Positions 1 through 31,723 of a DNA stretch of 64,000 nt are shown in pieces; position 1 is the stretch's first letter, and each line of letters starts with the position of its first letter. Where the stretch lies: the NCBI GenBank assembly GCA_965202585.1, contig OZ241828.1, positions 46,500,001 to 46,564,000 on the forward strand. Direction: 5' to 3'. The position numbers and the translations under genes were made by a program. The DNA comes from Thalia democratica. Lineage: Eukaryota. Below the pieces are notes generated by a model, which was not told where the DNA came from, did not search any database, and worked only from the letters and a program-made list of their open reading frames with translations.

Positions 1-3000
1 GCTGGCACTCCTTGGATCACAATGGCTTGTTGAGCTGGTGCTGAATCTCCCTTGAACGGCTTGCCGCTGTCGGCAGCAACCGGTGAGTATCCTGCGCCGT
101 ATCCGCCAGCAAATGGTCTGTCACCTGCCATTGGTTTGCCTCCTACAGCCAATCGTGATGGATGGTCGTAATCCTTGTCCTTGTGGTTGTTATCGAAGAT
201 AACACCTTGATCGTCTGCAACGTATCCGGCGTTGTCGAAGAACGGAACGTCGAACTTGTTACCGTCACTGAGAACTTGTTCGTCAGCGTAGAAAGCGTCA
301 CTCAATAATGGAGCACCTCCAACAATAATGGCTTGTTGAGCTGGAGCTGAATCTCCCTTGAACGGCTTGCCGCTGTCGGCAGCAACCGGTGAGTATCCTG
401 CGCCGTATCCGCCAGCAAATGGTCTGTCACCGGCCATTGGTTTGCCTCCTACAGCCAATCGTGCTGAGTCAAAGTCTCCGAGGTCTTTGTGATCGTCAGC
501 GAACACAATACCGTCGTGATCTCCGTAGTAAGAACCGTCTCCCTTGAATGCTGCTGGCATGAAACCTCCGTCGGTAACAATTGAGCTGTCACCGTAGACT
601 TCGTCATCTGCAGCTGGCACTCCTTGGATCACAATGGCTTGTTGAGCTGGAGCTGAATCTCCCTTGAACGGCTTGCCGCTGTCGGCAGCAACCGGTGAGT
701 ATCCTGCGCCGTATCCGCCAGCAAATGGTCTGTCACCGGCCATTGGTTTGCCTCCTACAGTCAATCGTGCTGAGTCAAAGTCTCCGAGGTCTTTGTGATC
801 GTCAGCGAACACAATACCGTCGTGATCTCCGTAGTAAGAACCGTCTCCCTTGAATGCTGCTGGCATGAAACCTCCGTCGGTAACAATTGAGCTGTCACCG
901 TAGACTTCGTCATCTGCAGCTGGCACTCCTTGGATCACAATGGCTTGTTGAGCTGGTGCTGAATCTCCCTTGAACGGCTTGCCGCTGTCGGCAGCAACCG
1001 GTGAGTATCCTGCGCCGTATCCGCCAGCAAATGGTCTGTCACCGGCCATTGGTTTGCCTCCTACAGCCAATCGTGCTGAGTCAAAGTCTCCGAGGTCTTT
1101 GTGATCGTCAGCGAACACAATACGGTCGTGATCTCCGTAGTAAGAACCGTCTCCCTTGAATGCTCCTGGCATGAAACCTCCGTCGGTAACAATTGAGCTG
1201 TCACCGTAGACTTCGTCATCTGCAGCTGGCAATCCTTGGATCACAATGGCTTGTTGAGCTGGTGCTGAATCTCCCTTGAACGGCTTGCCGCTGTCGGCAG
1301 CAACCGGTGAGTATCCTGCGCCGTATCCGCCAGCAAATGGTCTGTCACCGGCCATTGGTTTGCCTCCTACAGCCAATCGTGCTGAGTCAAAGTCTCCGAG
1401 GTCTTTGTGATCGTCAGCGAACACAATACCGTCGTGATCTCCGTAGTAAGAACCGTCTCCCTTGAATGCTGCTGGCATGAAACCTCCGTCGGTAACAATT
1501 GAGCTGTCACCGTAGACTTCGTCATCTGCAGCTGGCACTCCTTGGATCACAATGGCTTGTTGAGCTGGTGCTGAATCACCCTTGAACGGCTTGCCGCTGT
1601 CGGCAGCAACCGGTGAGTATCCTGCGCCGTATCCGCCAGCAAATGGTCTGTCACCTGCCATTGGTTTGCCTCCTACAGCCAATCGTGATGGATGGTCGTA
1701 ACCCTTGTCCTTGTGGTTGTTATCGAAGATAACACCTTGATCGTCTGCAACGTATCCGGCGTTGTCGAAGAACGGAACGTCGAACTTGTTACCGTCACTG
1801 AGAACTTGTTCGTCAGCGTAGAAAGCGTCACTCAATGCTGGAGCACCTCCAACAATAATGGCTTGTTGAGCTGGAGCTGAATCTCCCTTGAACGGCTTGC
1901 CGCTGTCGGCAGCAACCGGTGAGTATCCTGCGCCGTATCCGCCAGCAAATGGTCTGTCACCGGCCATTGGTTTGCCTCCTACAGCCAATCGTGCTGAGTC
2001 AAAGTCTCCGAGGTCTTTGTGATCGTCAGCGAACACAATACCGTCGTGATCTCCGTAGTAAGAACCGTCTCCCTTGAATGCTGCTGGCATGAAAACTCCG
2101 TCGGTAACAATTGAGCTGTCACCGTAGACTTCGTCATCTGCAGCTGGCACTCCTTGGATCACAATGGCTTGTTGAGCTGGTGCTGAATCTCCCTTGAACG
2201 GCTTGCCGCTGTCGGCAGCAACCGGTGAGTATCCTGCGCCGTATCCGCCAGCAAATGGTCTGTCACCGGCCATTGGTTTGCCTCCTACAGCCAATCGTGA
2301 TGGATGGTCGTAACCCTTGTCCTTGTGGTTGTTATCGAAGATAACACCTTGATCGTCTGCAACGTATCCGGCGTTGTCGAAGAACGGAACGTCGAACTTA
2401 TTACCGTCACTGAGAACTTGTTCGTCAGCGTAGAAAGCGTCACTCAATGCTGGAGCACCTCCAACAATAATGGCTTGTTGAGCTGGTGCTGAATCTCCCT
2501 TGAACGGCTTGCCGCTGTCGGCAGCAACCGGTGAGTATCCTGCGCCGTATCCGCCAGCAAATGGTCTGTCACCGGCCATTGGTTTGCCTCCTACAGCCAA
2601 TCGTGCTGAGTCAAAGTTTCCGAGGTCTTTGTGATCGTCAGCGAACACAATACCGTCGTGATCTCCGTAGTAAGAACCGTCTCCCTTGAATGCTGCTGGC
2701 ATGAAACCTCCGTCGGTAACAATTGAGCTGTCACCGTAGACTTCGTCATCTGCAGCTGGCACTCCTTGGATCACAATGGCTTGTTGAGCTGGTGCTGAAT
2801 CTCCCTTGAACGGCTTGCCGCTGTCGGCAGCAACCGGTGAGTATCCTGCGCCGTATCCGCCAGCAAATGGTCTGTCACCTGCCATTGGTTTGCCTCCTAC
2901 AGCCAATCGTGATGGATGGTCGTAACCCTTGTCCTTGTGGTTGTTATCGAAGATAACACCTTGATCGTCTGCAACGTATCCGGCGTTGTCGAAGAACGGA

Positions 3001-31200: not shown

Positions 31201-31723
31201 CTTTATCTTAAGTTTAGTGCTTAAATCTAAGCATAGACATAATAGAGTTGCACTTAATTGTATTTAAGGTATTTTTCTACAATACAAATCTTACTACAAG
31301 TTTTAATCTTATGATAGAAAAGTAAATTAACTAACCAACAAGACTTGCAACCACACTGTAAAAAGTATCAACGTTTTAGTTTAGGGTAAGTTTTATTAAA
31401 AATTTTAAGTTGAAAACCAGTTTAAACTTAAAGTATCAAATATTTGTTACATGTTATACAGATAGCATAAAAGCCTTAGTACTTATATAAAATTTAAAAT
31501 AACATTGTTACTTGATTAAAAGTCCTTTAAACCTTTTTATGTTAAAATTTTCTGCACAATATAAAATATTTTAAAAATAAAAAAATTATACGATGTAAAT
31601 CGTACTTTAAAAGTTATAATACGTTATATATTCGATAAATAAAGCTAAGTTGAGCTTTAAAACAAACCATAATGGAAGCAAGAGGGTCAAAATACTTAAT
31701 AATGATGATGTCTTGGCTGACAT
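1..31723 (-). CDS. Giant secreted vWF/gel-forming-mucin-family protein (SP - 3x Sushi - D1-D2-D'-D3 - vWC-like - 102-aa tandem repeat domain); 3' end lies outside the window
   Basis: Hand-built model; all introns GT-AG and all phases consistent. Exons (high to low): 31723-31668, 31355-31336, 31147-31072, 30556-30379, 29101-28947, 28760-28562, 28347-28109, 27934-27665, 27238-26847, 26442-26273, 26204-26089, 25988-25860, 25531-25348, 25147-24959, 24791-24642, 24463-24326, 24139-23918, 23706-23508, 23378-23149, 23032-22932, 22833-22565, 22328-21910, 21833-21655, 21203-21025, 20891-20638, 20564-20322, 19794-19374, 19213-<1. The first 27 exons total 5377 nt; in-window CDS is 24590 nt (~8196 codons) with no stop. 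Family motifs: [54 protein letters not shown]. Confidence 0.9.
19000..20891 (-). other. Post-D3 Cys-rich module, acidic linkers and vWC-like domains
   Basis: [17 protein letters not shown]...[14 protein letters not shown]...PGDNWDC; short PTPTPT and SSSGEED linker; vWC pattern [12 protein letters not shown]...CQPVECP...DGCCNNYRC. Confidence 0.75.
21120..23650 (-). other. D' (TIL'-E') and D3 (vWD-C8-TIL-E) assemblies
   Basis: [10 protein letters not shown]...[10 protein letters not shown]; [13 protein letters not shown]...WDKGTHI...[13 protein letters not shown]; C8 ([43 protein letters not shown]); TIL and E. Boundaries approximate. Confidence 0.85.
23650..26110 (-). other. D2 assembly (vWD-C8-TIL-E)
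   Basis: [14 protein letters not shown]...CSYILAR...WDSKSRV...[13 protein letters not shown]; C8 ([10 protein letters not shown]...[15 protein letters not shown]); TIL ([18 protein letters not shown]...[10 protein letters not shown]). Boundaries approximate. Confidence 0.85.
26089..28347 (-). other. D1 assembly (vWD-C8-TIL-E)
   Basis: [30 protein letters not shown]...WDG...SGLCGLFN; C8 ([10 protein letters not shown]...[15 protein letters not shown]); TIL ([18 protein letters not shown]...[10 protein letters not shown]). Confidence 0.85.
28562..31147 (-). other. Three Sushi/CCP (SCR) domains
   Basis: C...C..GF...C....W....P.C pattern three times: [34 protein letters not shown]; [31 protein letters not shown]; [33 protein letters not shown]. 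Confidence 0.8.
31336..31723 (-). other. Signal peptide exons (56-nt exon 1 plus 20-nt microexon)
   Basis: Spliced translation [31 protein letters not shown]: basic N-region, hydrophobic core, small-residue cleavage site. Microexon flanked by ttttacag and gttagt. Confidence 0.7.

Follow-up and report, generated by a model that had tools for sequence, protein, structure and literature searches.

Von Willebrand factor (VWF) and the gel-forming mucins arose from one progenitor that acquired different central modules, and the family diversifies by module exchange (PMC6109156). These central modules are A domains in VWF, Pro/Thr/Ser-rich (PTS) domains in mucins, and chitin-binding domains in the Ciona protein Ci-GFM1 (PMC6109156). 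Here, we describe a minus-strand gene of the pelagic tunicate Thalia democratica, whose 5' part lies in a 64,000-nucleotide (nt) window (C4:46500001-46564000 of an 801.8-Mb assembly, C4 being the window's own contig). The genome of this species has been reported at 790.7 Mb with a guanine plus cytosine (GC) content of 25.3%, the lowest among 38 tunicates (PMC13746493). The gene product belongs to the VWF/mucin family of polymers, and its novel central domain is polyanionic, offers few sites for glycosylation and contains many aromatic residues. With about 23,000 residues, this apparently secreted protein of gel-forming-mucin/VWF type is on balance probably the structural polymer of the endostyle feeding net.

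The minus-strand reading frame that ends at window position 19220 runs for 6406 codons without a stop and reaches base 3 of the window; the two other minus-strand frames contain a stop every 42–59 codons across 3..19220. The initial annotation, made from the letters of the window, had claimed an unbroken minus-strand frame over at least 19.2 kb. This claim is borne out, and the real exon is larger. When the left-flank DNA is joined to the window, the frame extends past the window edge to 19,830 codons in all, with no stop, no N and no indel, and a genome search with the repeat-bearing protein gave matches that fall within this one open frame. The giant exon measures 59,456 nt between its acceptor (window 19213) and its GTTAGT donor (C4:46459758), where it is predicted, by sequence only, to splice in phase 0 into an exon that starts with SGSVWKENRGC. 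The frame is absent from the program-made list of open reading frames, as the annotation had also remarked, solely because it runs off the window edge. The base composition of the array is distinct, with 53% GC versus 22–30% in its surroundings and about 25% in the window outside it. The GC content at third codon positions (GC3) is 0.45 in the array (window 3-18668) versus 0.25–0.30 in the other exons of the gene (18669-24141, minus strand), which fits frequent gene conversion or expression-linked codon use.

The whole array consists of 192 tandem units within a single exon, each exactly 102 residues long, with zero indels. Tandem Repeats Finder reported a period of 306 nt and 59.5 copies for window 1..18211, and the 61 anchors found in the window, which represent two unit types (A and B), are always spaced by exactly 102 residues. 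About 111 units are of type A and 67 of type B; the remaining 14, left unclassified, comprise 13 point variants and the final copy, which continues into the C-terminal tail. A recount of unit A (18 Gly, 15 Ala, 16 Asp+Glu, 11 Phe+Tyr, 8 Ser+Thr, no Cys and no Trp, with a net charge of -9) reproduces the composition first given for it, a Gly/Ala/Asp/aromatic-rich unit free of Cys and Trp with a charge of about -9. The array as a whole contains 16.4% Gly, 14.6% Ala, 13.9% Asp, 7.2% Pro, 6.8% Val, 6.5% Ser, 6.2% Phe, 5.3% Lys, 4.9% Tyr, 0.6% Thr and 0.0% Cys. Phe and Tyr together account for about 11% of the residues, Thr is almost absent, and the net charge per unit is -6 to -9. Neither unit type contains an N-x-S/T sequon.

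The register of the unit, taken from the first and last copies of the array, places a 59-residue variable half before a 43-residue constant half. The variable half is composed of short hydrophobic stretches and Asp-rich turns and occurs in two versions (A and B), while Gly, Pro, Tyr, Ala and Asp are abundant in the constant half. In DNA, the constant halves of A and B are 98% identical, whereas the variable halves are only 52% identical, with a motif pattern that is still common to both. A and B are therefore old versions, and the constant half has been homogenized across both. Within each type, units are 99.4–99.6% identical to their consensus, and the order of A and B along the array is irregular. 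The differences within types favor third codon positions (36/40/71 for the three positions in A, 26/23/71 in B), and synonymous and non-synonymous changes are about equal in number (71 vs 75 in A, 54 vs 57 in B). Both counts fit selection on the reading frame. Internal sub-repeats are weakly supported within the unit: the similarity of GGKPMAGD to SGKPFKGD is reached by about one shuffle in 100, and no other pair is significant. AlphaFold2 gave no confident fold, with a predicted local distance difference test score (pLDDT) of 33 for two units (11 alignment rows) and 47.7 for one unit (16 rows), and the charge-hydropathy position of the repeat is borderline between order and disorder. A lone 55-residue repeat fragment with one TAA stop, 87% identical, was observed outside the window at C5:14484083-14484244, a different contig of chromosome scale; it looks like a dispersed pseudogene piece.

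Searches for relatives of the repeat gave few matches. No Pfam family matches the array above cut-offs, six matches, all unnamed, came from 1.84 billion representative proteins searched exhaustively with HMMER, and a protein collection clustered at 90% identity returned three. Five of the six HMMER matches are true relatives; the sixth is a spurious bacterial repeat. A feature search of the ESM Atlas gave no usable match, no relative was found among 236 pattern matches in JGI metagenome contigs, and a text search of a set of papers for four unit peptides found none of them. The repeat had not been recognized when it was first noticed, and that statement is upheld: it has no Pfam family, no named protein among the 1.84 billion representatives and no peptide in the papers searched. 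As judged by these sequence comparisons, the 102-residue repeat is a novel central domain outside described protein domain families.

Two of the relatives (P0011/P0002 and P0012/P0003) are clearly from other species. At 41–55% identity, their units still recur at exactly 102 residues, each with a net charge of -10 to -11 and 9 aromatic residues, and both halves contain invariant positions. The conserved spacing and invariant positions at this level of divergence indicate that both length and sequence are constrained across species, which argues against a mere spacer. A further protein, P0005 (639 residues; ENA contig k119_1049396 of 2,542 nt), contains one or two strongly diverged units, 38% identical, within unrelated low-complexity sequence, and could represent either a remote paralogue or a decayed copy from a different organism.

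The exons upstream of the array encode an assembly scaffold. In order from the N-terminus, it contains Sushi domains, D1 (VWD-C8-TIL-E), D2 (VWD-C8-TIL), TIL', an E module, D3 (VWD-C8-TIL), and TIL-like and VWC-like modules. D1-D2-D'-D3 is therefore present as three VWD-C8-TIL assemblies plus TIL', with Pfam matches on exon pieces in the right order. The signal peptide-Sushi-D1D2D'D3-VWC series proposed earlier agrees with the Pfam matches to Sushi, VWD, C8, TIL, VWF-like and VWC domains and, for the signal peptide, with inspection by eye. A Pro/Thr run that includes STPTYDKE lies between D3 and the VWC module (window 19374-19794, minus strand) and may be a vestigial PTS stretch, like the 50-residue one in Ci-GFM1 (PMC6109156).

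Downstream of the array, on the minus strand of L009 (outside the window), the gene continues with VWC modules, a D4-like VWD + C8 + TIL, a long Cys-rich run and further VWC modules. At its 3' end, a cystine-knot domain (Pfam Cys_knot 5.3e-9, DAN 3.4e-8) is followed by the stop. D4, VWC and cystine-knot domains, for which the initial annotation had pointed leftward, are thus all found by Pfam, with exon joins that are predicted. The last exon (L009:2843-3160, minus strand) ends the protein with ...RSRKCDDEL, which resembles an endoplasmic reticulum (ER)-retrieval tail and does not fit what we take to be the usual retrieval pattern, [KRHQSA]-[DENQ]-E-L. The N-terminal part (at most 1,822 residues), the giant exon (19,818) and the C-terminal part (about 1,200–1,400) add up to an estimated 23,000 residues, which corresponds to a protein mass of about 2.4 MDa and an mRNA length of about 69 kb.

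The gene is expressed. The sequence of window 18212-19800 was detected in DNA runs from marine plankton as well as in eight RNA runs, and contigs, rather than raw reads, from four RNA-library runs were compared with window 18212-24200. One 6,050-nt contig of run X5 contains eleven spliced junctions, all GT-AG, that lead from the 5' exons into the giant exon and include 19374|19213; two of these junctions were seen independently in run X6. The junction between 19374 and 19213, at which the array had been proposed to join the scaffold exons, is GT-AG, in frame, and spliced in contigs of two independent RNA-library runs. The exons joined at the RNA junctions form a continuous frame of 1,130 codons from TIL2 into the array. 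The X5 contig ends at 18631, where the repeats start; short-read assemblies usually break at repeats. In the same run, word depth is 680–4,678 for the repeat versus 16.9 for the unique exons, and the ratio of about 40–280, a poor and only semi-quantitative measure, is of the order expected if all of the approximately 190 copies are transcribed, lending weak support to that reading. Unnamed transcript peptides from Tara Oceans (source 'merc', ERR17... accessions) also carry the repeat, and two of them (P0001 and P0010) span the boundary between the last unit and the C-terminal tail.

The features required for polymerization were compared with those of solved structures. For the C8-3 exon, the strongest single matched stretch was D3 of MUC2 (117.6 bits), and D3 of VWF was also matched; FCGBP ranks first overall solely by summing six repeated modules. 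The D3 cysteine positions were marked by comparing wild-type VWF in the PDB with a D'D3 construct that bears Ala at two cysteines, which we take to be Cys1099 and Cys1142, the formers of intermolecular disulfides. The first position, equivalent to Cys1099, is kept, with CECFC aligned to CACFC of VWF. An initial reading of the MUC2 alignment, by which this first cysteine would be lost, was ruled out by the wild-type and mutant VWF chains; only the second is missing. No furin-type site (R-x-K/R-R) was found by eye at the D2/D' boundary of the spliced translation. The cystine knot is intact at the profile level. Tail-to-tail dimerization is thus well supported as a prediction from the domain profile, and head-to-head linking is plausible, perhaps in a form not identical to that of VWF or MUC2. 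The features of the gene inside the window are listed in Table 1.

Table 1. Features of the gene in the window, in order of window position, from the window edge to the start codon.
Feature	Window position	Strand	Content and evidence
Tandem array, in-window part	3..18668	-	61 full 102-aa units (types A, B) and a partial first copy; array reaches C4:46459758; no Pfam family
Unique 5' part of giant exon	18669..19213	-	Cys-rich VWC-like module, then Asn/Glu-rich linker into the array; RNA contigs cover 18631-19212
Intron directly upstream of giant exon	19214..19373	-	160 nt, GT-AG; joints in RNA runs X5 and X6
Linker and VWC-like exon	19374..19794	-	Short Pro/Thr-rich acidic linker, Cys-rich VWC-like module; RNA joints; no Pfam match alone
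Three post-D3 exons	20322-20564, 20638-20867, 21025-21203	-	Extra TIL-like module (weak TIL match), Cys-rich linkers, acidic stretch; RNA joints, continuous frame
D3 assembly (VWD3, C8-3, TIL3)	23149-23378, 22932-23032, 22565-22833, 21910-22328, 21655-21833	-	Pfam VWD 1e-14, C8 6e-21, TIL; PDB matches; RNA joints
TIL' exon (23508-23706) and TIL2 exon (23918-24141), D2/D' boundary	23508..24141	-	Pfam TIL 2e-13; RNA joints
D2 exons (VWD2, C8-2)	24281..26047	-	Pfam VWD, C8 on exon pieces; approximate exon ends
D1 exons (VWD1, C8-1, TIL1, VWF-like E module)	26073..28467	-	Pfam VWD 5e-13, C8 2e-16, TIL 1e-10, VWF-like 9e-13; approximate ends
About three Sushi/CCP exons ahead of D1	28550..31202	-	Two of three Sushi matches clear the Pfam cut-off
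First coding exon	31623..31723	-	ATG at 31723, hydrophobic signal-peptide-like start, read by eye

In its overall architecture, the salp protein resembles the gel-forming mucins (MUC2, MUC5AC and MUC5B), which share the N-terminal D1-D2-D'-D3 and C-terminal D4-like, VWC and cystine-knot domains, the placement of tandem repeats in one giant central exon and the lack of a furin-type site at D2/D'. Unlike in these mucins, the array has no PTS character (Thr 0.6%, Ser 6.5%, Pro 7.2%), and PT-rich sequence is confined to a short linker upstream of it; the array is Cys-free with no Pfam match, CysD domains are absent, and Sushi domains precede D1. The predicted negative charge, read here from the sequence, would also come from Asp of the chain rather than from glycans. 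At 59.5 kb, the central exon is presumably well above the size of mucin central exons. The protein shares with VWF the D assemblies, the VWC modules, the cystine knot and the CxCxC motif with the Cys1099 equivalent, but it differs from VWF in that no exon, nor the array, matches a VWA domain, the Cys1142 equivalent is absent, and no RxKR site is present at D2/D'.

More distant systems share single aspects of this design. SCO-spondin, otogelin, alpha-tectorin, zonadhesin and insect hemolectin are VWD-based secreted scaffolds of non-mucin fibers or gels; unlike the salp protein with its repeat, they carry known inserted domains (TSR, LDLa, discoidin, ZP, MAM). The Balbiani-ring proteins of Chironomus, which are analogues only, are secreted proteins of megadalton size whose coding sequence is for the most part a single huge exon of tandem units with constant and variable/sub-repeat parts, and are spun by larvae into tubes and feeding nets; they differ from the salp protein in lacking a VWD or cystine-knot scaffold, and the sequences are unrelated. 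Resilin-type repeats are similar to the constant half, whose Tyr residues could be cross-linked, in their richness in Gly, Pro, Tyr, Asp, Ser and Ala; this is a likeness of composition only, and no sequence homology to the salp unit was found. In Ci-GFM1, a tunicate member of the family, the central region is likewise not of mucin type and the PTS stretch is very short, but it is 2,880 residues long and contains chitin-binding and other known domains (PMC6109156), whereas the salp protein is about eight times longer.

The initial annotation had proposed a mucin/VWF polymer scaffold that carries, where the PTS domain would otherwise lie, a long acidic repeat with no Cys and few glycosylation sites. 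The N- and C-terminal domains and the spliced RNA contigs support this core of the proposal. The accompanying label of a new class of protein is too strong, because the swapping of central modules is a known route in the VWF/mucin family (PMC6109156).

These features suggest how the protein may work. Monomers would dimerize tail to tail through the cystine knot, and the dimers would be linked head to head through D3, where one of the two linking cysteines of VWF is kept, giving a disulfide-linked extracellular polymer. Asp residues of the chain, instead of sulfated or sialylated glycans, would provide the negative charge for packing and swelling that depend on divalent cations, while the aromatic/hydrophobic patches and Tyr residues could offer sites for association or cross-linking between chains. 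The resulting net would be secreted by the endostyle and then swallowed and digested together with the food.

The cuticle, mesoglea and egg theca suggested as settings in the initial annotation were guesses from the letters, with the source organism not known to it. In a pelagic tunicate of salp type, the realistic candidates for such a polymer would be mucus of the feeding net or gel of the tunic. The feeding net is ranked first because it is continuously swallowed and digested, so that a glycan-poor chain digestible by proteases would be economical. In the literature, no molecular description was found of the protein make-up of any tunicate feeding net. As a more tentative step, the protein could be the main fiber-forming polymer of the salp net: a glycan-free, Asp-charged, Tyr/Phe-rich block copolymer, with a constant half that may be resilin-like, assembled by mucin/VWF machinery. 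Its contour length as a monomer is about 7 micrometers (19,584 residues × ~0.36 nm), and the mesh of salp nets is on the micrometer scale. If the protein is indeed the main polymer of the net, its molecular length could help to set the filter geometry, and the all-protein design would allow the swallowed net to be digested and recycled.

The alternative that ranks second is that the same polymer acts as a polyanionic, water-retaining matrix in the gelatinous tunic, or as another epithelial mucus of the gut or body surface. This is a genuine possibility, although a less probable one. A charge of about -6 to -9 per unit, multiplied by 192 units, would suit an osmotically swelling gel. Tunicate epidermal secretions use VWD proteins, such as the oik30 house proteins of Oikopleura (PMC3390340), and Ci-GFM1 is a protein of the gut membrane rather than an endostyle product (PMC6109156). 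Nothing directly opposes a tunic or other mucus role; however, mucin-like and VWF-like transcripts mark cell clusters of the ascidian endostyle (PMC12212465), and a net that is continuously secreted and eaten would be consistent with very strong expression and with a chain that is digestible and poor in glycans, although this latter argument is indirect.

The array might instead be mainly a length spacer, produced by runaway unequal crossing-over, in which only length, solubility and charge matter, as in many PTS domains. The near-identity of units to their type consensus (99.4–99.6%) and the irregular order of A and B point to recent homogenization and expansion, the raised GC3 is what frequent conversion would give, and no fold is predicted. 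Against this, the orthologues at 41–55% identity hold the exact period and invariant positions in both halves, the 192 units contain no indel, and the A and B variable halves, at 52% DNA identity, keep their motif pattern, which together indicate that sequence and length are constrained and make a pure spacer improbable. It is very unlikely that the size of the array is partly an assembly artefact, such that the gene is real and its array much shorter or interrupted in the living animal: although 58 kb of near-identical 306-nt units are hard to assemble, random mis-joins would rarely leave 59.5 kb without an N, frameshift or stop, and the repeat/unique word depth in RNA-library contigs is of the order expected for about 190 copies.

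Several points weigh against the interpretation of the protein as a disulfide-linked polymer of the feeding net with the size and structure given above. The position equivalent to Cys1142 in D3 is occupied by Val (GYRV versus GYEC in VWF), and with this cysteine absent, head-to-head covalent linking may differ or be weaker. The splice out of the giant exon at its 3' end, like every C-terminal exon, is predicted from sequence, and the copy number is taken from a single assembly of the 58-kb array, whose units are nearly identical within each type. The 5' exon ends above 24141 are approximate, and the splice model there exceeds the length permitted by the RNA contig by about 210 nt. The RNA evidence consists of contigs, and RNA libraries can contain DNA. 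Finally, the low pLDDT values, obtained with so shallow an alignment, are compatible with disorder and with an unseen fold, and cannot separate the two.

The mitochondrial contig (C1833), the smallest of the assembly, is 14,120 bp long, with 33% GC and a COX1 gene that contains in-frame TGA codons. The ascidian mitochondrial code restores conserved glycines of COX1, as in IFGISMGVVGASLS and PVLIGGFGNYLLP, where other codes read Arg or Ser; COX1 has 34 AGR codons, and AGR is Gly. About 24–30 tRNAs were called on this contig, including trnM(CAU), trnM(UAU) and a tRNA with a UCU anticodon, and the open frames of the size of protein genes lie on one strand. AGR as Gly, two trnM genes and one-strand open frames are what we take to be the tunicate pattern. 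The mitochondrial code and the set of tRNAs speak against a cnidarian, ctenophore or chaetognath, and the assembly size and the GC content agree with the values published for T. democratica. A search for the GH6 domain, a tunicate marker, was silent in this genome and in the control genomes alike. Degraded COX1 copies with many stops were observed in nuclear contigs (C4:56842736-56945724 and C757:31294-32138); these are probably insertions of mitochondrial DNA, those on C4 being about 10 Mb from the giant gene.

The remainder of the window contains a 551-residue open frame with abundant Ser, Pro, Arg and Asn at 45208-46863 (minus strand), with no Pfam match, and further minus-strand pieces at 49058-49714 and 51838-52140, one of which matches the SPOC domain (E 1e-4). 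These three pieces may be exons of one neighboring gene for a nuclear protein. Two short plus-strand open frames (39424-39726 and 42292-42579) share the motif NLKWS.H..., have no Pfam match, and look like remnants of one repeated element.

Salps are among the fastest grazers of the ocean, and their mucous nets drive a large carbon flux. The gene described here is a concrete candidate for the material of the salp net, for which it provides unique probes and diagnostic peptides. Its architecture is extreme, with a coding exon of 59.5 kb, an estimated mRNA of about 69 kb and a predicted protein of about 2.4 MDa. For materials science, it would represent a natural design of a glycan-free polyanionic polymer. 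For the family, it suggests that a charged domain with few glycans can take the place of the PTS domain on the mucin/VWF assembly machinery.

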